From assembly GCA_976226885.1 (NCBI GenBank), contig OZ320315.1:14136001-14200000 (forward strand): DNA of 64,000 bases. Reading direction: 5' to 3'. Numbering within the stretch: position 1 is the stretch's first letter; each line of letters starts with the position of its first letter. Below the pieces are notes generated by a model. The model saw nothing but the letters and a program-made list of their open reading frames with translations. It ran no database searches and was not told where the DNA came from. Made by a program: the position numbers and the translations under genes. Below, one piece after another: positions 2,011 through 34,870 of the stretch. This DNA comes from Iphione sp. A-MEVVRFRX5 (taxonomy: Eukaryota).

Positions 2011-5000
2011 AATTGAAATTGAAATTGAAATTTGTTTATTCATCTTTCTCCGGATACAGAGATCTCCAAGATAAATAGTGCAAAAAAGCAAACAATCTGT
2101 GATTTAAGTGCGTTGACAAAAAGTGATTACATGGTACAATGAGCTACACACTAGTGGGGACCATTGGCAGCTAAGTGAACTGTATTTGGCCTACAGGTGA
2201 ACAACAGTAGTATATCTATCATATAGTAAACATCAAGATATATCTGGCATAGTGATGGCTGTCTCATGACTCTATGACTAGACAGTGATTGGAATCAGAT
2301 TAAGAGGCACCATCATTATCACAGCAAAATAGGGCATCAGAAGTAAATCATCCAACCATATTACATGATTACTAGGTTCTAACTGTCATCGTTAATATCA
2401 TATATCATTCAATATCGCAAGTTCCAGTCAATATCTTTGGTATCAGATATTGTCCATCATCTCATATCATATATTAGTCAACTTTTTGCCGGTATTCATT
2501 GAAGAGCCGACATACGCGTTGCATGCACCCATGTAGTAAAATCGCAGATTCACACAAGGTAAATGTCATCTGAACTACTATAGCAACTTAGGGTTAAGAC
2601 ATTGAAATAGTTACACTCATCTAGCATTATCATGAATAAACAGTGTGCTTCAATAATATTGGATAATCTTCTGGGATCGACTATTTGTTATGCTCATTAG
2701 GATTCAAGTCCAGTTAAGATGTCTTATATGGTTTTTAACACAGAAAGCCTGATTCAGGCGATCTCGGGGTCAATCCCCAGGTTACCGTGTGTCAGATACA
2801 TTACACATCGGCAGTCTCTCACCAACATTGAAAATGGGTCAACAGGGTAATAGCAGCCAATGGTGCATTTAGTGTATGGCAGCTTTCCTCCATGTACCGC
2901 ACATATTCCGTAGATGAAGTGTAGAAGCAATAACGACAGAGCGTGTGCTTATCATCACATGTTAGAAGAAGGTACATGTAATGTTTGCCCCACAGTTCCC
3001 CCTGGTGACCCTGTAACAGATTCACTGCCCTACTTCACGGATATAGGCCAGTGCTGTCTTCGGGAGCCTGCGACACCTTTTAATGTCTTTTGGAAGGCAA
3101 TTCCACTGACGTACTGCCCTATAGCCCAGTGATCTGGTGTAAGAGGTTGTCTTGGGCCTATCAAGGTAGCCACGAGGTTCCCCACCATCCGGGGTCACAC
3201 TGGACCGATCAATTTTTAGAAGGCCGAGGTGGTGGAGCTTATGGATCACCTGTAGACCTTGCCATTCTACCATAGTTTCGATGCGCTCTATCCCAAACTT
3301 CTTGTGCATGGATGCCGCTGGGATGAAATCTCTTTTATGCAGCACCAATCTGCAACATCGATTTAAGTGTACCTGAAGCCTTACCAAGTCCGACTTTGGT
3401 ACACCATACCAAAGGACTGCCTGGTAGCGTAGGTGTGGTAGGACCAACGTCTTTAGTAGCAGCAGTCTTGCCTGAAAAGGTAGAATGACCTTTAGCCTGG
3501 CCAGCATTTTTGATGTTAACCAGGTCTTACTCATGACCATTTTCAGACTTTTTTTCATTTTTAGCTGTCCATCCAGATGGTAGCCTAGAAGTTTTGTACA
3601 GCTATCCACTTGTAGTTTTTCACCACCCAGCGAAAGGTCTAAGGAAATTCCTGAGGCAGGACCACATTTGCCTCTGCTGAGTAGCAGCCCATGGCGTGAG
3701 CACCAATTGTCAACTGCATCCAGTACCCTCATACTGGTGGCCCGCAGTCTGAGTAGGTCCCTTGCTCCCACCAGCACTGAAAGGTCGTCTGCATACATGA
3801 TGGGGCAACAGTCAACTGGCAGGCATTTTGGAAGGCTATCAACTACCAAAGTAAAGGCACTGGGCCCGAAAACCGAGCCCTGGGGTACTCCCTGGCTCAG
3901 TTCCAGCAACCCAGAGTCAGTGCCCTCACACCTGACGTACTGTTTGCGGCCACTAAGGTAGGACGCAACCATCATCCTGAGGTGTGGGCCTGCACCCAAT
4001 TCCGACAGTCTCCGTAGGATGCTTTAGTGCGGGACTATGTCAAAGGCCTTTGTGAAGTCAAAGGTAAGGATGCAGGCATACCTCTTAGCATTTAGAAGGC
4101 ATTTAGCCTGATTGACTAGGCATGCCACGGCCATCTCAATCCCCTTCCCGGCTCGAAAGCCGTGTTGACTGTTATGTAGTGCACCTTGATGGTGCAGCTT
4201 GTTCATCAACCTGGGGACAAACCAACTTTCGTAGACCTTTCCTTGAATTGGAAGAATAGAAATTGGCCTGTAATTTGATAGCTCGTTAGGATTGCCCCGT
4301 TTAAGGATGGGGGTGACCCTGGCTATCTTCCACGAGGTAGGATATTTGCCAGTAGCATATATCCTAGTGCAGATCCAGGAGAGGAAGTCTGGCACAAGAC
4401 ATAGCAGAGGTTTCAGCACCCTCGATGCCTTCCACCCCTGACGACTTGTGAGGTTTTTGTTTCCTAACCAGCTCCAGGATGTCCGTAGGACTTGGGGAAC
4501 CAAGTTCAAAGCGGCTCCGGACTGGGTCAAGCCAGTCTTGCAACCTTTGTGGAGGGAACACACGAAGATCTTCCACACCTTTCACAAAGAACTGGTTGAA
4601 GGCGTCTGGCAATGAGATGCCCATGCTCGTCTCAATTTGTTCTCTGTCTGGGTACCGCGCTTGCATTGTGCCTTTTCCCATTGCTTCGTTGAGAATACTC
4701 CATAATCTCTGGGTATTCCTGCCAGCCTCCCTCACCCTGGTTTCCCAGTGTCTCCTTCTACAAGTCTGCATAGCTCTCTTAGCCTTATTGTTTAGATATT
4801 TAAATATCCGACGGCTGTCCTCACATTTATATTTCCTCCATTTATGGAGGAAGTATGCCCTGTCCTTCAGGAGTTCAATGGTTCCTTTGTCAAGGACCAG
4901 GCCATCTTCACGTCGGCGATGCTTGCTTTGTGTCGGCGAACACCTATTGTCTAGCTCACATTTGACATGCTGTGTGAAGTGGTCCCATGCCAATTCATGG

Positions 5001-8158: not shown

Positions 8159-8171
8159 TCTCCCTAAAGTT
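8159..8171 (+). repeat. Target-site duplication of PLE, left copy (tctccctaaagtt)
   Basis: The identical 13-mer occurs at 12970-12982, immediately outside the other terminal repeat. Confidence 0.85.
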
Positions 8172-8413
8172 ATTCTTCTTAAGGACTACACACAAAACCC
8201 AACCAACAGGAATATGTTTATGGAGGCTTTAATTTGCAATCTTAATACAACTCAACGTTTCGGACTTCAGTGAGTCCTTCTTCAGGAGTAGTTGAATATT
8301 AACAGAGAATTTGGCTTTGCATATTGGTATTTTCTGGACACTTTAATTGTATGTAAATGTGTCAAGGGTCAAAGGTCAAAGAAAGTGTAACTGGGTCAAC
8401 AGGTGAAAAAAAT
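8171..8413 (-). repeat. PLE 3' terminal direct repeat (pseudo-LTR), 243 bp
   Basis: Base-by-base match to 12728-12970; no difference found by eye. Confidence 0.95.
8248..8294 (-). ncRNA. Minimal type I hammerhead ribozyme (3' pLTR copy)
   Basis: Minus RNA CAACUACUC-CUGAAGA-A-GGACU(cacuga)AGUCC-GAAAC-GUU^GAGUUG: catalytic core, 5-bp stem II, palindromic ACGU stem III. Predicted cut at 8254/8253. Confidence 0.85.
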
Positions 8414-8453
8414 TTTTCCAACATATTGTCCATGATTTCAAAAGTATTGTCTA

Positions 8454-9347
8454 CTAATGTCCATCTGGGTGACGCTTCTGTGGCCATAGGCCTTCGTTAA
8501 TTATTGACTGTTTCAAGGCTTTACCGATGTTCTGGTTGGCCTTGTACACCATGAGATAGATGTCTGAGAGCCACTCTCCTACTGGTATACATTCTAACCT
8601 ATCTGTCCTTGGTTTGGGAATTGGAGTTGGATGATAGTCTACTTTACTGGCTACTTTACTCTTGCTCTCAGGTACATAAGCTTCAACATTATTTACTATA
8701 GGTGTTGATGTGCTGGGCTTGGGTGTTTGTTTCTCCTTTGCTGGGGTTGCTGATGGTATCGGGGCTTTGTCGTTGGTCTTGACCTTGCTCGTCTTGGGTT
8801 CTTGTTTCTGCTTGATCGTTGTATCCACTATCTCTCCTTCTTCTACTTCACTGTCGGAAGAGATCTGGAGGTCCTCAGCCATCTCTTGGATGTTGGTCAG
8901 GGCATCGATGTCAGAACGGCATGTGGTAGCGGTGATTGGTTTCTTCTGATCGGTCGAGGGGGCACGGGGATCGTTTCTGGACTCATCACTATCGTTCTCG
9001 GACTCTGTCGATGTCGAGCTACTGGTGCTGGTGTTCAGCGACGTCGAGGAGCTCATGGAGGTGCGGTCTTTCAGGTATACTGTTTGCTTCTTCCTCATAT
9101 TGAACTGCTGCTGTACGATTCTGCTAAGAGGGTGTTGTGGTTGAGTCCGTATACGTTTCGTCGGATCACGTTTGGGTGGGCTGATCTCTATCGCCTTTCT
9201 CTTATTGGATTCGGTGTTACTCTGAGGACCTGTTGCTGTAGGCCTTGGTGATGGTGCGGACCCACTTGGTGTTTTGTTGGAGGGGGTTGGTTTGGTCGAT
9301 TGCCCACAACTGCTTCCACCCGACTGGGTCGGTTTGCCTAGAAACAA
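8454..9347 (-). CDS. PLE accessory ORF-B, 297 codons, Ser/Thr/Pro/Lys-rich, probably disordered, with a short ordered C-terminus
   Basis: Stop-free from ~9394 to 8457. Basic NLS-like KRKAIEISPPKRDPTKRIR, acidic SSDSEVEEGEI, C-terminal RLECIPVGEWLSDIYLMVYKAN. The listed start is TTG and the first ATG is ~97 codons in, so the true start is uncertain. Confidence 0.6.
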   Translation of the reverse strand: MFLGKPTQSGGSSCGQSTKPTPSNKTPSGSAPSPRPTATGPQSNTESNKRKAIEISPPKRDPTKRIRTQPQHPLSRIVQQQFNMRKKQTVYLKDRTSMSSSTSLNTSTSSSTSTESENDSDESRNDPRAPSTDQKKPITATTCRSDIDALTNIQEMAEDLQISSDSEVEEGEIVDTTIKQKQEPKTSKVKTNDKAPIPSATPAKEKQTPKPSTSTPIVNNVEAYVPESKSKVASKVDYHPTPIPKPRTDRLECIPVGEWLSDIYLMVYKANQNIGKALKQSIINEGLWPQKRHPDGH

Positions 9348-9663
9348 TTCGGGTCTTGTATAAGATTCTGATACGATAATTGGTAGGGGTTGGTATTATT
9401 CTGGTGTTTTTGGTGGTCGTGATTAATACAGGCGGGGGGATTTTATCATGGCAATCGTGGATTGTGTTTAGATGTTGTTTCAGGGTATCAGACCTCCCAT
9501 AAAATTTCCCACAAATTTTACAGGGGTACTTACCCTTGCTGTCAGTGTTGTTGCGTTTGGACCTGTGCTTGTCGTTCAAGTGTTTTATCATCATTCTGTG
9601 TGTGTTGCGGACACATTCACCACAAATATGGCACTCGGTGCAGTCTTTAGCAATATTGTTCAT
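9217..9663 (-). CDS. PLE accessory ORF-A, 148 aa, two C2H2-type zinc fingers
   Basis: C-x2-C-x13-H-x4-H (CHICGECVRNTHRMMIKHLNDKH) and C-x2-C-x12-H-x4-H (YPCKICGKFYGRSDTLKQHLNTIH). ATG has A at -3 and lies 48 nt after a predicted TSS. Confidence 0.75.
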   Translation of the reverse strand: MNNIAKDCTECHICGECVRNTHRMMIKHLNDKHRSKRNNTDSKGKYPCKICGKFYGRSDTLKQHLNTIHDCHDKIPPPVLITTTKNTRIIPTPTNYRIRILYKTRIVSRQTDPVGWKQLWAIDQTNPLQQNTKWVRTITKAYSNRSSE

Positions 9664-9707
9664 CGTTTCGGTGGTTATTGATGTTGACAGTGCTGTGGTT
9701 TGGAGGT

Positions 9708-9860
9708 GAATGAGAGCGATGCTCTTGGCGGCTGCTTATATAGTCCTGAGTTGTTGACGTTGTTATGGCGATCATGCGGTTGCGTATGCAACAATGTTGT
9801 TCGATTACGTCAAGTTACGTCCTTGTGACGTAACTTCCCGTTCCTGGCGCCACGTGGTCG
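9708..9860 (-). promoter_or_regulatory. Internal Pol II promoter immediately 3' of the PLE RT-EN stop
   Basis: TATATAAG at 9742-9735 and Inr TCATTC at 9713-9708 with +1 A 31 nt from the first T. Several TGACGT/TTACGT CRE-like sites at 9754-9834, CACGTG at 9851-9856; CpG-rich. Confidence 0.7.
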
Positions 9861-9863
9861 CCG

Positions 9864-12161
9864 CTACAGTTGTTCATTTATTCCTTGCGGTGTTATCGTT
9901 TCAAGTACTCTAATGTATGCTTCCTCTAGTCTGAGATGGATGTTCTTGTTCTTGGCACTGTTATCTGCTAGGATCATTTGGATATCGTCCTCTAATACGT
10001 CATGATCAAGAAAATGAGCTGCTACGGGAGAGTCCTGTCGGTGTGTCCGTAAGTCATATTTGTGTTCATGTAGTCTGTCGACTGCTCGTCGTCCGGTCTG
10101 GCCTACATATTTCTTCCTGCAAACTGGACACAAGAGTATGTAAACTACACCCCTTGTGTTGCAGTTCATTCGTCCCACTGTTCGGTGAGTATCCTTGGAT
10201 TGTTGACTGTGGATCGTGTTTGTGTTGATGATATTATGACAGTGAGAGCAAGCCTGTCGGTTACAAGGCTCACTCCCCCCTTGTTTAGTCGGTCTTGGGT
10301 GGGCAGAGTGTGTTAGAATATCTCTAAGGTTAGAACTGCGTCTGTGGGTAATCATCATTTTATATTTTCTGAATTTCTCATTTGTAGGTAAGTTTGGTAT
10401 CATTGATATGGCATCCTTGATTATCTTACTGGCTTTGTTATTGTATTGATTGTATTCCAGGACGAATGGGATGATCTTCTTGTCCGGTTTGTTGGTAGTG
10501 GATAGTATGGTTTCCCTGTCCATATCCCTTACCTTGTCTATGGCTGATTTGACTCTTGTGTGTATGTGGCCCCGTAGGGTGAGGTGTTTTAATAGTTCTT
10601 TTGTACAACTGTTGTATTCTGTAATGTCACTACAGATCATCCACATGCGTATCGCCTGTCCGTAGGCTATAGCGTCTTTCTGGTGTTTAGGATGGTGTGA
10701 TGTGTAGTGTAGGTATGAGTATGTGTCGGTTGGCTTTCTGTAAAGTTTTGTCATTATTCTGCGCTCCTGATTTAAGTATACTGTGGTGTCCAAAAAATTA
10801 ACGGTTGTTGGGCTGTGTTCGTAGGTGAATTTGATTGTGTTGTGGAAGTCATTCATGCCTTCTAGAGTCAGTAGTAGTTCGTCTTCAGTGCATCTGAATA
10901 TGGCGAAAATGTCGTCTATGTATCGTTTCCATTCTCTGGGTTTAATTTCAAGGCTTTCTATTAGTTTTTCTTCTAGATCTGCCATGAATATGTTTGCATA
11001 ACTGGGAGCCATTTTTGTGCCCATGGCTGTACCCTGTATTTGGTGATAGTATTTGTTGTCGTAGGTGAAGGTATTGTTAGTAAGGACTATTTGTACTAGT
11101 TTAGCTGTAATGTCGGGTCTCATGTGTTTAGATGGATGTTTGTGAAGGGCAGTTCGGACTGCCTCAATTCCCTCATCATGTGGAATGGAGGTATATAGGG
11201 CGCTGACATCTATGGTGACCAGGTGTTCGTCCTCATGTAGATAGCCAATGTCGTTAAGGATGTTGATGAAATGCTTAGTATCACGTATGTAGCTGGGGAT
11301 TTTTAGTACTAGGGGTTTTAAGATGTTGTCTACTGTTCTTGAGATTATGTCAGTGGGAGAGTCAATACCAGACACTATAGGCCTGCCTGGGTTGTTTATT
11401 TTGTGGATCTTCGGTAGTATGTAAAATGGTGAAGTTCGTACATTGTTAGGTAGTAGAGTTCTATGTGAATTATGTGGTAGTTGAAAGTTATTCTCCATTT
11501 CTTGTAGTAAATTCTTTATAGAATTCAGTCGTTCGGGAGTGGTGTCATGCATTGTTCGTGTATAGTGGTTGGGGTTGTTCAGTTGGCGCATTACTTCATT
11601 GTGGTAGTCATCTGTATTCATTATTACTATAGAGCCGCCCTTATCGGCTGGTTTGATCACTATGTTGGTATCGTCTCTTAGATCGAAGAGGGCCTTCGAC
11701 TCTTCTTTGCTGAGGTTACTGCATCGTTTCATCGGTTTTGGGGGTTTTAACATTTCTCGAGTGATGTAATTGGTCATTGTGTCTATGTATTCTGTGATTC
11801 CTGGTGGTGGGGTCCATCCGGATGATTCCTTCGGGAAAATGCTCTGTTCTGGAGGGAGGTCTTGGTGTTGGAAATGGTGCTGTAGTTTGATACGTCTGGT
11901 GAATAATAATGTGTCTCTGACCGTGTGTATGTGATTTGGTTTGCCTGGAGTGGGGACGAAGCTGAGTCCCCTCTCCAGTAGGCTTAGGTGGTGTTTATCT
12001 AGTTGTTTAACTGAGAGGTTGACGGTTGTGCTGGTGGTGGTTGGTTTGTATTTGGTGAATCGTCTGTTTTTCGCACTCTTCTTTCTCGTAGGCTTGTTTG
12101 TTGTGTTTGTTCTAGTCTTCCTATTAGTTGGTTGATGTGATTGAGTTGTGCTGGGTTGCAT
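9864..12161 (-). CDS. PLE reverse transcriptase + GIY-YIG endonuclease
   Basis: KPADKGG, FYILPKIHK..PGRPIVSG, TIDVSALYTSIPH, QGTAMGTKMAPSYANIFM, RYIDDIF, IKFT..NFLD; GVVYILLCPVCRKKYVGQT..RLHEH..E..GIN. 765 codons without a stop. Confidence 0.97.
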   Translation of the reverse strand: MQPSTTQSHQPTNRKTRTNTTNKPTRKKSAKNRRFTKYKPTTTSTTVNLSVKQLDKHHLSLLERGLSFVPTPGKPNHIHTVRDTLLFTRRIKLQHHFQHQDLPPEQSIFPKESSGWTPPPGITEYIDTMTNYITREMLKPPKPMKRCSNLSKEESKALFDLRDDTNIVIKPADKGGSIVIMNTDDYHNEVMRQLNNPNHYTRTMHDTTPERLNSIKNLLQEMENNFQLPHNSHRTLLPNNVRTSPFYILPKIHKINNPGRPIVSGIDSPTDIISRTVDNILKPLVLKIPSYIRDTKHFINILNDIGYLHEDEHLVTIDVSALYTSIPHDEGIEAVRTALHKHPSKHMRPDITAKLVQIVLTNNTFTYDNKYYHQIQGTAMGTKMAPSYANIFMADLEEKLIESLEIKPREWKRYIDDIFAIFRCTEDELLLTLEGMNDFHNTIKFTYEHSPTTVNFLDTTVYLNQERRIMTKLYRKPTDTYSYLHYTSHHPKHQKDAIAYGQAIRMWMICSDITEYNSCTKELLKHLTLRGHIHTRVKSAIDKVRDMDRETILSTTNKPDKKIIPFVLEYNQYNNKASKIIKDAISMIPNLPTNEKFRKYKMMITHRRSSNLRDILTHSAHPRPTKQGGSEPCNRQACSHCHNIINTNTIHSQQSKDTHRTVGRMNCNTRGVVYILLCPVCRKKYVGQTGRRAVDRLHEHKYDLRTHRQDSPVAAHFLDHDVLEDDIQMILADNSAKNKNIHLRLEEAYIRVLETITPQGINEQL

Positions 12162-12538
12162 TTGTGTTCCAATGTCTGTCTGGTCTCGTTCAGTTGCTGT
12201 TCAAGTGTGGTTATTCGTTGTTTGTAATACTCAGCCAGGAGAGATGTTAGCTTCCTGCTGAATTGCAAGTGGGCTTGTTCCCACAATAGTGTAAATTGTA
12301 GTGATTGTTCAGGGACTTGGGCAGATACTTTAGTCTGCAATCCCTTAGGTGATACCTGATTGGCGATACAGGTTCTCAGGTAGTCGAAGTGGTGTTTGGC
12401 CTTATTCAGGCTCAGGACCAGCTTCCGATGTATACGGAAATACGGGACTGCTTCGTCCGGTATTCTCAGTGTTTGTTGTTCTTCTTGTACTGCTGGAGGG
12501 TCTCCAGTAGTATTTGGTGGTCTATTTGTGTCTGCCAT
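11999..12538 (-). CDS. PLE N-terminal domain, out of frame (-1) with the RT-EN ORF
   Basis: ATG at 12538 (MADTNRPP..). KAKHHFDYLRTC..V.PKGL and a coiled-coil segment resemble PLE N-termini. Overlaps the RT ORF; one extra A in the A5 run at 12071-12067 would fuse both into 891 aa. Confidence 0.7.
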   Translation of the reverse strand: MADTNRPPNTTGDPPAVQEEQQTLRIPDEAVPYFRIHRKLVLSLNKAKHHFDYLRTCIANQVSPKGLQTKVSAQVPEQSLQFTLLWEQAHLQFSRKLTSLLAEYYKQRITTLEQQLNETRQTLEHKCNPAQLNHINQLIGRLEQTQQTSLRERRVRKTDDSPNTNQPPPAQPSTSQLNN

Positions 12539-12727
12539 ATGTTCGTTGTTATGAGAGAAGGCCGTTTGGGGAAGAGCAGTTCTCCTCTGCACTGTCTGGA
12601 TCCTATGGGGATACGTGGTGGATGACAGCCAAGCTGATCTGAATAAGGGACGCACCAACAGGCAGTTGTGTGGCCTAGTCCTGTTGCGAGGGGGATCCTA
12701 TGGTGGATGCTATGTGTGTCAGAAAGA

Positions 12728-12970
12728 TATTCTTCTTAAGGACTACACACAAAACCCAACCAACAGGAATATGTTTATGGAGGCTTTAATTTGCAATCTT
12801 AATACAACTCAACGTTTCGGACTTCAGTGAGTCCTTCTTCAGGAGTAGTTGAATATTAACAGAGAATTTGGCTTTGCATATTGGTATTTTCTGGACACTT
12901 TAATTGTATGTAAATGTGTCAAGGGTCAAAGGTCAAAGAAAGTGTAACTGGGTCAACAGGTGAAAAAAAT
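12728..12970 (-). repeat. PLE 5' terminal direct repeat (pseudo-LTR), 243 bp
   Basis: Identical to 8171-8413. Confidence 0.95.
12805..12851 (-). ncRNA. Minimal type I hammerhead ribozyme (5' pLTR copy)
   Basis: Same motif as 8248-8294; predicted cut at 12811/12810. Confidence 0.85.
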
Positions 12971-12982: not shown

Positions 12983-13874
12983 GCCTAGTCATTTTTTAAC
13001 TGTTAGCACATGTCATTTACATTATATATGCCATAAACTATAAGTTTTACCCTTTTTTGAAAATTTATACAGCAGTTAGATGATTTAGAAACTACTCCAT
13101 GTAAGGAGCCACACTGCTGTTTATAATAATTAATGTTGGAAGATGAAGTCTATTTGATAGATTTCAGAGCCTTTGACCAAAAACATGAATTACATAATTA
13201 TTCATTCATTTTCCTGATTTAGATGATTTAATTAGTGATTAGGGTTTAAACTGTAGGAAAAATATCAATATGTCAGATTTAAGGTAATGCTGGCACTAAT
13301 TCACTAAGGTGACTACTCAGGTTGGGTAACAAGGATTATGGAAGGCCATTGATTCCATATTTTCCAAGATATTATTAGTTAATTGACTTCCCAACATAAT
13401 GTTGTAAATTACATTTTTGAAATATGTTTATTAATGTTTTTTAGTACTGAGGATTGAGGACAATATTTTTCTACTTTTACAGGAGCAAATTGAGAATGTT
13501 CTATTGAGTTAATAAAGGTGAGGACATCTACTGCAAGAATTCATGATCCCATTTAGAGTAGAGTAAATATATTATCAGTATATCAACTTATGAAAAATAC
13601 AAATAATGGATAAATTGAAAAAGAGAATATTAACCATTAGTGTACAGAGGAACCTTGCCTTCTGTAGCCCCCGTATTCGTATTGTTGCACTCCCCGTAAT
13701 GATTTTAAATAACCAATTGTTTTCTATAGAAATTGTACTAGTTAACCGGACACTCACATTCCGTATTCGTACACTATTTAGGTCCATTTTAAAGCAGTTA
13801 TCATAGTAAATGCATGCAGTTAACAGGACTAGAGAGAACAAAGGAAGCAACAAGTAGGCCAGACCATCCTAAAG

Positions 13875-14083
13875 GAAGAGACAACAAAGCGCAGAGTGAC
13901 TAACATACGTTCAAAGTCAAATACAAGCATGTGAAATGGTTACATAAGAGTGACTAAATGAAGAGATAACATAGCGCAGAGTGACTAACGTAGGTTCAAA
14001 GTCAAATACAAGTGTGTGAGATGATTACATAAGAGTGACACGTAGGTGGTGACCTCCTACAGGAAAAGACAACATAGTGCAGA
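13875..14083. repeat. 85-bp tandem duplication plus a partial third unit
   Basis: gcagagtgactaac..ttcaaagtcaaatacaag..ttacataagagtgac at 13891 and 13976. Confidence 0.8.
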
Positions 14084-34169: not shown

Positions 34170-34870
34170 CTATAACACAGTTTCAACTTGTGTCTCATCA
34201 GGCACCATTAAAAAATGGGGTTTTGGATGGAGTTCTTGCCACCTGTGTGAACAAATTATTGTTATTTTATTTTTTAATGACGAGGCTAAATGGTGGCTTG
34301 GTATTCTCCATCAAGTATGTTTAATCCATTTGGTGATAGGGATCTAAGTCTATGTATCAATTTCTGTTCTATTGTGTTTCTTAGCGTTATTGATTTTTCG
34401 TTCTTTGGGGACATGTGGATAAAGTCCAGTATCCTTATTTCTAGGTCTTCTAGTTGCCTATGATCATTCTTGTTGAAATGTTCTGTGATAAGGTTCTTCT
34501 TGTGCAGTTTCTTTATATCGTAGAAGTGGTTCTTGAATCTATCTTTGATTCTAAGTTTCGTCTGTCCTACATAATGGATATTGCATTTCTTGCATGTTAT
34601 GGCATATATCAGATTGCTGCTGTTGCAATTCACTTTGTGTTTTATTTCATATTCTCTACCTGTGTAAATGTTTTTTTATTTTCTTGTATGTGTTGATGGC
34701 TGTGTAGTATCTACAGCTCTTGGCATGGCATATCTTGGTTTCTGGTTTTACTGATGGTTTGCTCTCCACATCATCGTAACTGATCAGTCTGGCCCTTACC
34801 AGGTGGTCTCTAAGACCGTACCTTAGTCCCTTCGGGCATGTACTAGGGCACCACCATATTGTACATCGCA
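34170..34870 (-). mobile_element. 5'-truncated Penelope-like element fragment (linker + GIY-YIG + 3' UTR)
   Basis: LRDHLVRA..CHAKSCRY, frameshift, then NCNSSNLIYAITCKKCNIHYVGQT..RFKNH..EHF..E..I..L..NGLN; stop at 34288-34286. Confidence 0.88.
34172..34205 (-). ncRNA. Degenerate hammerhead-like motif in the 3' UTR of the second PLE
   Basis: CUGAUGA-GAC(acaa)GUU-GAAAC-ugu-GUU. Core intact, stem II has a G-U pair (possible CpG decay), stem I pairing poor. Confidence 0.4.

Follow-up and report, generated by a model that had tools for sequence, protein, structure and literature searches.

Penelope-like elements (PLEs) with an endonuclease (EN+) have been described with the open reading frame (ORF) for the reverse transcriptase (RT) and endonuclease as their only or last gene, and their retention of introns has so far been without a functional explanation. 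Many extra ORFs are found in the Terminons/Athena of bdelloid rotifers, which are giant, endonuclease-deficient PLEs located at telomeres. Among the retroviruses, the tas/bet unit of the foamy viruses has an internal promoter, and the Bet protein arises when splicing joins the N-terminus of Tas to the bel2 ORF. For the EN+ PLEs of the Penelope/Poseidon, Neptune, and Nematis groups, Craig et al. (2021; PMC8557442) mention only ORF1 or upstream ORFs, and no ORF 3′ of the endonuclease. Spliceosomal introns are known to be retained in PLEs, which are also able to disperse genes that contain introns (PMC3846280; PMC4209133). In Adineta vaga, intron-containing host genes were dispersed by Penelope in one-off trans-mobilization events, with a host gene taking the place of the PLE ORF (PMC3846280), and the capture of ORF3 by LTR retrotransposons in bdelloids provides an example of additional ORFs (PMC5408684). 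Here, we examine a PLE in which the RT/endonuclease ORF is followed by 1.45 kb of sequence, and our comparisons make it likely that this segment represents a native accessory gene of one EN+ PLE lineage, a single gene whose conserved intron would be retained in some transcripts and removed from others.

The Penelope-type element was located on the minus strand at positions 8166 to 12970 of the window, by which we mean the whole 64-kb stretch of DNA that was analyzed. It contained terminal direct repeats (pLTRs) of 248 nt each that were 100% identical, one at the 3′ end (8166 to 8413) and one upstream copy (12723 to 12970), both on the minus strand, and the element bearing the cassette is young. 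The spacing of the pLTRs, and thereby the element unit, was 4557 nt, with the repeats arranged as from a partial tandem insertion. Each repeat contained a hammerhead-like core (8256 to 8285 and 12813 to 12842, respectively), and the sequence ATTAAA was located at 8347 to 8342 and at 8233 to 8228 in the 3′ copy. The core pattern CTGAAGA...CGAAACG was found twice in the window, once per repeat, against 0.02 expected occurrences, and both helix I and helix II were formed in the predicted MFE fold. A search against Rfam gave no hammerhead match, neither at the gathering score nor at E ≤ 1.

The RT ORF (9864 to 12161, minus strand) encodes a protein of 765 amino acids, which was identified as a PLE-type reverse transcriptase by its Pfam RVT_1 domain (E = 7.8e-10). 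The C-terminal GIY-YIG endonuclease covered residues 671 to 753, with a weak Pfam match that was below the cut-off (E = 0.022). PF01541 was carried by the full-length RT relatives that aligned over 94% to 100% of the query, and a second PLE remnant in the window aligned to residues 664 to 762 of the RT ORF. A total of 2327 RT relatives were identified at E ≤ 1e-10, with the domains PF28514/PF00078/PF26215/PF01541, and the RT of the window fell among these relatives in the tree. With a PLE-type RT, a GIY-YIG domain in the same ORF, and pLTRs, the element is an EN+ PLE. The ORF list further contained an upstream ORF, ORF1 (11999 to 12658, minus strand), which overlapped with the RT ORF by 163 nt and was 37% to 38% identical (tblastn) to the ORFs upstream of RT in the related loci L001 and L003; the Pfam search with ORF1 yielded no family above the threshold. 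Exact-sequence look-ups in the protein collection with the RT and with the first cassette ORF of the window gave no record, and the family to which the element of the window belongs was examined in a single copy.

According to the initial annotation, the 1.45 kb between the RT ORF and the 3′ repeat, here called the cassette, seemed to be native to the element rather than a nested insert, and this was borne out by the comparison with related elements. An ORF homologous to the zinc-finger ORF of the window, ORF-A, followed by a long ORF, was located 3′ of RT in all 7 RT relatives with readable contigs (L001 to L005, L008, and L009; 46% to 53% identity), and the cassette was also present on the shorter contigs of L007 and L010. 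The ORF-A homologs were identified by tblastn at a distance of 39 to 240 nt 3′ of the RT stop in L001 to L005, L007, L008, and L009, with E-values of 1e-6 to 1e-16 when compared with the window, and they matched one another with values as low as 1e-41. L010 was recognized from three features, namely its ORF-B, the translation, and the splice sites. A second long overlapping frame was present after the zinc-finger ORF in every locus. The contig of L001 closes on itself with an overlap of 30 nt, resulting in a unit of 4910 nt that contains the cassette. In the RT tree, the 8 cassette-bearing RTs were placed within a clade of 12 rows with 100/100 support, and L006, which has no cassette, was placed in the sister group of the cassette clade. 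The available relatives are 30% to 50% identical at the protein level, and synonymous sites are therefore saturated.

ORF-A (9217 to 9663, minus strand) is 148 amino acids long when the intron described below is retained. The two C2H2 fingers that had been assigned to it previously were both recovered, the second by a Pfam match to zf-C2H2 (PF00096) at residues 46 to 69 that scored 25.8 bits where the cut-off was 25.2, and the first (C11/C14/H28/H33) by invariance in the alignment together with a confident β-β-α model. The pattern C-x2-C-x12/13-H-x4-H of classical C2H2 fingers occurred twice, and the zinc ligands C11, C14, H28, H33, C48, C51, H64, and H69 were invariant in 9 of 9 sequences at an overall identity of 27% to 34%. 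Both fingers adopted the β-β-α fold in the AlphaFold2 model with pLDDT values of about 90, and the tail was disordered. A fold search with this model returned two-finger DNA-binding peptides as the top PDB matches, at a weak E-value (5e-3), and a search of the Protein Atlas with ORF-A returned generic small C2H2 clusters only.

The second frame, ORF-B, was an open frame of 297 to 313 codons at 9347 to 8454 on the minus strand, with 313 codons from stop to stop, and overlapped with ORF-A by 131 nt in a different frame. As noted previously, it ends 40 nt before the repeat, with the end of the stop codon at 8454 and the edge of the repeat at 8413. The first ATG is located at 9098, inside the open frame rather than at its beginning, which corrects the initial annotation on this point. 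The other two frames of the region contained 17 and 19 stops. Structure prediction had been proposed as a check, and the single-sequence AlphaFold model of ORF-B consisted mostly of low-confidence coil, in agreement with the disorder attributed to it, with three helices at residues 73 to 93, 140 to 160, and 256 to 285. The Protein Atlas search with ORF-B gave nothing meaningful. No significant sequence similarity was detected between the ORF-B of the window and that of the L001 group, and their homology is one of position and layout only. A similarity between their C-terminal helices that was seen by eye found no support in HMMs made first with 6 and later with 22 C-termini. The motif EEGEI, which resembles an ARS2-binding motif, was present in ORF-B of the window and of L004 only, and was not conserved.

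The initial annotation had treated ORF-A and ORF-B as two ORFs. Both frames were confirmed, but a conserved candidate intron makes it most likely, as judged from the sequences, that they belong to one gene with an alternatively retained intron rather than being independent of each other. The proposed exon 1 (9534 to 9663, minus strand) would contain the start codon and zinc finger 1 and end in phase 1 inside Gly44, with the donor agg|GTAAGT at 9533. It would be followed by an intron of 196 nt (9338 to 9533, minus strand; GTAAGT...ttgtttctag), which if retained supplies ORF-A with zinc finger 2 and with the conserved "RIxY" stretch, and by exon 2 in the ORF-B frame (8454 to 9337, minus strand), with a basic NLS-like stretch, a low-complexity region rich in Ser/Thr and acidic residues, and a C-terminal helix.

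The donor G|GTAnGT was located between the two fingers in 10 of 10 loci, at a homologous codon and in phase 1, and the donor codon was the sole column with an invariant third base among 84 ungapped codon columns. The donor glycine was encoded by GGT in all 8 loci compared, against a usage of 17.5% for this codon (P about 9e-7 if independent, although this and the frame statistics below overstate independence because the loci are phylogenetically related). The codon after the donor glycine was ATG, AAG, or ACG, which places a G at position +5, and of these AAG and ACG are minority codons. At the acceptor, a pyrimidine tract and YAG were present at the homologous place, in a codon phase of ORF-A that differed between loci. 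The intron lengths were 196, 236, 239, 236, 242, 225, 241, 224, and 236 nt, and the length modulo 3 equaled the offset between the frames of ORF-A and ORF-B in every locus, regardless of whether this was +1, −1, or 0. The spliced ORFs would encode 337 amino acids in the window and 334, 330, 320, 314, at least 331, and 332 amino acids in other loci. Furthermore, the "IPxL" residues in the B frame ahead of a conserved methionine were located outside ORF-A in L005 and L004, and yet they were conserved. We infer from these patterns that splicing takes place and that both protein isoforms are made. In a protein library of 1.84 billion representatives, no product resembling the spliced form was found, and the 18 matches start at or near the internal methionine. 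A first candidate for the intron, of 92 nt (GTATTA...CTAG), was rejected because it did not join the frames, and programmed frameshifting between ORF-A and ORF-B was rejected on the grounds that the offset is +1, −1, or 0 depending on the lineage.

A different explanation would be that ORF-A and ORF-B are separate cistrons without splicing, such that ORF-A is translated by scanning and ORF-B from its own AUG through termination-reinitiation on a bicistronic RNA, and the splice-like sites are by-products of conservation at the protein level. The arrangement of stops and starts fits this explanation, in that the ORF-A stop overlaps with the ORF-B ATG (UGAUG/UAAUG) in L001, L007, L008, and L010 and precedes it by 25 to 26 nt in L005 and L004, never with an intervening ATG, and in the window the ORF-B ATG is the first ATG past the ORF-A stop. 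The conservation of the methionine just past the ORF-A stop in the L001 group fits an independently translated ORF-B equally well, and the database gene calls begin at this conserved internal methionine. However, the stop and start are 118 nt apart in the window rather than overlapping as in a termination-reinitiation bicistron, and the stop in the other frame is created by the Leu-Met codons themselves. ORF-A, at 124 to 148 codons across loci, is long for reinitiation and holds 5 to 9 internal ATGs, and of the restart sites only that of L004 was preceded by a TURBS-like UGGGA. Two cistrons would moreover leave unexplained the single invariant third base at the donor codon, the acceptor AG that is kept in differing codon phases, the covariation of intron length with three frame offsets, to which the fused ORF of L003 also conforms, and the conserved B-frame residues that precede the methionine outside ORF-A. 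For these reasons, we regard translation as two unspliced cistrons as unlikely, while noting that splicing and reinitiation are not mutually exclusive modes.

The evidence for one intron-containing gene also has to be set against explanations in which the cassette is foreign to the element. The PLE may have picked up a zinc-finger gene of the host once, intron included, and carried it as a passenger without service to the element, as could be imagined for a cassette with its own promoter-like region and intron, and capture is indeed a plausible origin of the cassette. As a description of its present status we hold this to be improbable, since an unselected passenger would have decayed, whereas the zinc ligands are invariant and the long frames intact across a clade with 100/100 support in which the RTs differ by about 50%. 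The word-based search with ORF-A gave four matches only, and the exhaustive profile search only 18 cluster representatives. Of these, 4 are identical in length to ORF-B of the PLE contigs L001, L005, L007, and L010 or were retrieved from it, and the 14 without contig placement may include a host copy. That another element is nested here, or that the frames are open by chance on a T-poor strand, is the least credible of the explanations and is, on the sequences compared, effectively refuted by synteny. For ORF-B, neither a Pfam family nor homologs in the word search were found, and the sense strand of the cassette contains only 17% T, which leads to longer random ORFs; the A/C-rich skew is the same as in the RT ORF, as had been noted previously. 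Yet in 5000 Markov-1 simulations matched in composition, the open frame averaged 100 codons and never exceeded 242, as compared to the 313 codons observed for ORF-B. No inverted repeats, as already reported, and no duplications were found at the flanks of the 1.45 kb, and the order of RT, zinc-finger ORF, and long ORF was the same in ten loci, from at least 3 other samples.

If the cassette is one gene, its transcription probably starts from an internal promoter that contains CRE sites. The candidate region is the 200-nt spacer between the RT stop and ORF-A (9664 to 9863, minus strand), in which the motifs listed in the initial annotation were read as given: CACGTG, TTACGTCA, TGACGTAA, ACGTCA, TATATAAG, and TCATTC. 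The TATA box TATATAAG is located at 9742 to 9735 and is followed at the canonical spacing of 31 nt by the Inr TCATTC with its A at 9711, and there is no ATG between 9711 and 9663. The proposal of an internal promoter was upheld in part, in that TGACG/CRE sites were about 9-fold enriched across loci, with 12.6 per kb in the spacers from the RT stop to ORF-A against 1.4 per kb elsewhere (Poisson P = 4e-10), and that a perfect TGACGTCA was located at the RT stop, 65 to 93 nt upstream of the ORF-A ATG, in L005, L007, L008, and L009, whereas the TATA box was confined to the window and absent from the spacers of the other loci. TCATTC was found in three spacers (P = 0.006), and the similarity between the spacers of the window and L002 was weak (P = 0.03). 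In other loci, spacers of 39 to 90 nt could hardly accommodate a promoter unless it extended into the RT coding sequence.

In the model that we propose, one transcription unit 3′ of the RT/EN ORF would be driven by the internal CRE promoter, assisted in the window by the TATA box at 9742 and the Inr at 9711, and would end together with the element RNA in the 3′ repeat. Retention of the intron (9533 to 9338) would lead to translation of ORF-A from the ATG at 9663, yielding a small two-finger C2H2 protein. Removal of the intron would fuse finger 1, with 43 residues, in frame to the ORF-B exon, giving a product of about 337 amino acids with the basic NLS-like stretch, the disordered Ser/Thr/acidic region, and the C-terminal helix. 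The RNA that is reverse transcribed must be unspliced, because the genomic copies keep the intron. Our best guess is that the gene product binds nucleic acids and serves as a regulator or adaptor for the expression or the RNP of the element itself. More tentatively, and with less confidence than doubt, we suggest that one PLE lineage may have a complex-retrovirus-like program, where an internal CRE promoter and an alternatively retained intron provide two accessory proteins from one 3′ gene. One would bind nucleic acids through two fingers, the other would carry finger 1 fused to a disordered protein, and they would control transcription or the RNP of the element itself or counter silencing by the host. 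If so, the retained intron would be a functional part of PLE biology and no mere curiosity.

Two products that depend on a kept intron would give the retention of introns in PLEs a selective rationale, and would have a bearing on how PLE RNA escapes splicing ahead of reverse transcription. PLEs would thereby join the retroelements that have evolved regulatory or accessory genes. Annotation pipelines that take such ORFs for host zinc-finger genes would be misled.

An accessory gene 3′ of RT/EN with two products via an intron is an architecture not described for the PLE class. The element shares with canonical EN+ PLEs the RT with a C-terminal GIY-YIG domain, the optional ORF1, the pLTRs, the hammerhead-like core, and the retention of a putative spliceosomal intron, but differs from them by a conserved gene of 1.3 to 1.5 kb, with its own predicted intron and promoter-like region, after the endonuclease. 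It has in common with Terminons/Athena a PLE-class RT accompanied by additional ORFs; no sequence relation to Terminons was seen, and here the GIY-YIG domain is present, the element is 4.6 kb and interstitial with ordinary flanks, and there is one compact accessory gene. An intron-containing gene other than RT located between PLE terminal repeats is also seen in Adineta vaga, which offers a plausible origin for the cassette, although in our case the gene accompanies an intact RT/EN and has been conserved across the whole clade. Likewise, the extra ORFs of LTR retrotransposons represent an ORF 3′ of pol that a lineage has acquired and keeps, albeit in another class of element and for another protein, and there without report of a conserved, alternatively retained intron. 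Finally, although PLEs are not retroviruses, there is no relation in sequence or fold, and both promoter and splice are predicted here, the cassette would by analogy resemble tas/bet of the foamy viruses, with a 3′-proximal accessory unit located after the enzymatic genes, a candidate promoter inside the element, ORFs that overlap, and a splice by which the N-terminus of the first protein would be fused to the second ORF.

The 1.45-kb cassette between the RT/GIY-YIG stop and the 3′ repeat is a real, native, and conserved accessory gene of a Penelope-like element (PLE) lineage. The initial annotation had described positions 8414-9863 as a promoter followed by 2 ORFs, and all of its listed features were recovered. 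The ORFs, both on the minus strand, were ORF-A (9663-9217; 148 aa), with a Pfam zf-C2H2 match at residues 46-69, and the ORF-B frame (9347-8454), which ended 40 nt ahead of the 3′ repeat. The candidate promoter motifs comprised the TATA box TATATAAG at 9742-9735 and the initiator-like TCATTC with its A at 9711, and the region also contained an E-box and the CRE-like sequences TTACGTCA and TGACGTAA. The sense strand was poor in T (17%), which lengthens random ORFs; the ORF-B frame was open for 313 codons from stop to stop, compared with a mean of 100 and a maximum of 242 codons for the longest open frame in 5000 Markov-1 simulations, and the remaining 2 frames across ORF-B contained 17 and 19 stops.

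The element as a whole is a complete PLE (8166-12970, minus strand) with paired terminal direct repeats of 248 nt (8166-8413 and 12723-12970) that were 100% identical, the unit being 4557 nt. It is very young. ORF1 (12658-11999, minus) was followed by the RT/GIY-YIG ORF (12161-9864, minus; 765 aa), which matched Pfam RVT_1 with an E value of 7.8e-10 and GIY-YIG weakly. These 2 ORFs overlapped by 163 nt in different frames (11999-12161, minus), and overlapping arrangements of ORF1 and RT, with ORF1 separated by a frameshift, have been noted in some PLEs. Each terminal repeat contained one minimal, contiguous hammerhead-like core (8256-8285 and 12813-12842, minus), consisting of CTGAAGA, a 5-bp helix II and CGAAACG, then GTT and the helix I partner. 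The core pattern matched twice in the window versus 0.02 times expected and helices I and II were predicted to form in the MFE fold; an Rfam search gave no hammerhead match. A second PLE remnant, a bare GIY-YIG fragment of 115 aa (34286-34633, minus), shared 36% identity with the first element's endonuclease and came from an unrelated PLE, with no zinc-finger ORF nearby. It was also noted that two 47-nt direct repeats (13869-13915 and 13954-14000, plus strand), 89% identical and 85 nt apart, were located about 900 nt past the end of the upstream terminal repeat at 12970.

Neither inverted repeats nor duplications bracket 8414-9863, in line with the annotation of the cassette as native rather than nested. 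The window contained a single copy of the cassette-bearing element, and nativity was judged through RT relatives, the best of which were 46% to 53% identical. The contigs compared (L001 to L010) were those of 7 of these best RT relatives, 2 found through relatives of ORF-A or ORF-B, and one with an RT at 42% identity, and they represented at least 3 other samples. An ORF-A homolog was located 39 to 240 nt 3′ of the RT stop in L001 to L005 and L007 to L009 (tblastn E values between 1e-6 and 1e-16 in comparisons with the window, falling as low as 1e-41 between relatives), and a long second frame followed ORF-A in each cassette-bearing locus. The L010 contig, which begins within ORF-A and has a stop inside finger 1, was identified by its ORF-B, translation, and splice sites, while the copies in L002, L004, and L009 were partly decayed. 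The L001 contig closed on itself through a 30-nt overlap (1-30 = 4911-4940) into a 4910-nt unit that included the cassette, so this related element exists in tandem units or in units that were assembled as circles. No cassette was found on the inspected contig of the 42% relative, L006.

In a maximum-likelihood RT tree, the 8 cassette-bearing elements fell within a clade of 12 rows with 100/100 support, 8 of these rows having been inspected for the cassette; the cassette-less L006 was placed in the sister group. Since an unselected insert would not survive such divergence, the cassette is ancestral and maintained, and its nativity to the PLE lineage is, on these comparisons, nearly certain.

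The reading frames of the overlapping ORF-A and ORF-B are offset by +1 in the window and by −1 in the group of relatives including L001, whereas the 2 ORFs are fused at an offset of 0 in L003. Frameshifting between them was rejected, because an offset that varies among lineages can be accounted for by a splice and not by a frameshift. A strong donor was identified in every locus, interrupting in phase 1 the Gly codon that lies between the 2 fingers; that of the window was agg/GTAAGT at 9533, and those elsewhere were aag/GTATGT, aag/GTACGT, acg/GTAAGT, aat/GTATGT, and similar. Among the 84 ungapped columns of the codon alignment, the donor codon was the only one with an invariant third base, third bases varying even in the Cys and His ligand codons. 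The donor Gly was encoded by GGT in 8 of 8 loci, versus a usage of 17.5% in the RT ORFs, and the next codon was ATG, AAG, or ACG (the latter 2 being minority codons), each of which places a G at +5. The acceptor, a pyrimidine tract and YAG, was located 3′ of a conserved RIxY..SPY stretch in each locus (ttgtttctag/G in the window, ending at 9338), and its AG fell in differing ORF-A codon phases, which indicates a nucleotide rather than a protein signal.

The predicted introns measured 196 nt in the window (9533-9338), 224 nt in L002, 225 nt in L003, 236 nt in L001, L007, and L010, 239 nt in L005, 241 nt in L004, and 242 nt in L008. Length modulo 3 equaled the frame offset in all 9 measured loci, including L010, which was retrieved once the rule stood. 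Splicing would yield ORFs of 337, 334, 330, 320, 314, ≥331, and 332 aa; in the L004 and L002 copies the frame was broken further downstream of the splice. In L003 (3764-4981) no in-frame stop interrupts the intron, so that an unspliced transcript would already join both fingers to the long exon in a single ORF of 406 aa or more. Both annotated frames stand, but the conserved candidate splice sites and the frame rule favor one gene over 2 separate ones.

The most economical model, and on this evidence a probable one, is that a single intron-bearing gene yields 2 products: intron retention would give a two-finger protein, and intron removal would join finger 1 to a long disordered exon. Two published accounts describe PLEs as keeping spliceosomal introns and dispersing intron-containing genes (PMC4209133; PMC3846280). 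We rate pure reinitiation after ORF-A lower than splicing as a route to ORF-B. It would be in keeping with the UGAUG or UAAUG stop-start overlaps in L001, L007, L008, and L010 and with the ORF-B ATG being, in all loci, the first ATG after the ORF-A stop, including across the 118-nt gap in the window, but the other-frame stop is a product of the Leu-Met codons themselves and no TURBS-like motif was found outside L004. The L001 group furthermore conserves a B-frame IPxL upstream of its conserved ORF-B Met, and since this lies past the ORF-A stop in L005 and L004 it is most simply read as translated. Reinitiation and splicing are not mutually exclusive.

Across 9 aligned ORF-A sequences, 27% to 34% identical to that of the window, the invariant residues were M1, C11, C14, H28, H33, C48, C51, R57, H64, H69, and one Pro. 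From this alignment, AlphaFold2 predicted 2 beta-beta-alpha fingers at a pLDDT of about 90, followed by a disordered tail, which together with the invariant ligands bears out the 2 C2H2 fingers initially annotated; the fold matches were generic two-finger DNA-binding peptides, the best being Tramtrack (E 5e-3). The window ORF-B had no Pfam family and no homolog by word search, and its single-sequence model was mostly low-confidence coil with 3 helices, the last at residues 256-285. A profile of the L001-group ORF-B, searched against 1.84 billion cluster representatives, matched only 18 proteins, all of at most 286 aa. Four of these, the ones set in genomic context, matched or came from the PLE contigs L001, L005, L007, and L010, and the other 14 may include a host copy. 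The window ORF-B had no significant similarity to this profile, and it is equated with the L001-group ORF-B by its location, its length and composition, and the structure of the gene. An acidic EEGEI after a Ser-rich run, which we take to resemble the EDGEI-type ARS2-binding motif, was observed in the window (8829-8843, minus) and in L004 (around 4080), and was not present in the ORF-B of the other relatives.

TGACG half-sites were concentrated in the spacers from the RT stop to ORF-A, at 12.6 per kb versus 1.4 per kb in the rest of the elements (Poisson P 4e-10). A perfect TGACGTCA spanned the RT stop codon in L007, L008, and L009 and was located 25 nt before it in L005, in all 4 cases 65 to 93 nt 5′ of the ORF-A ATG; the window contained two 7-of-8 matches. 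The initiator-like TCATTC was present in 3 spacers (P 0.006), and the window and L002 spacers aligned weakly around CATTCAC (P 0.03). Clusters of TGACG/CGTCA were also located upstream of ORF1 at the 5′ ends of L001, L004, L005, and L009, about 2600 to 2950 nt upstream of the RT stop, and are presumably CRE-type sites of the main promoter; the 5′ end of the window element had no such cluster. The annotated candidate promoter is shared among loci in its CRE enrichment but not in its TATA box, which was found in the window alone. We consider a partly conserved internal promoter plausible, with the sequence evidence tipping slightly in its favor.

A full-text literature search retrieved no description of a gene 3′ of the endonuclease in endonuclease-containing (EN+) PLEs, and Craig et al. 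2021 (PMC8557442) describe one ORF for RT and EN, with ORF1 upstream as an optional addition. Terminons, which are EN-deficient telomeric giants, do not fit. The nearest functional analogy may be the layout of foamy viruses, in which an internal promoter is associated with tas and Bet is a spliced Tas-Bel2 fusion.
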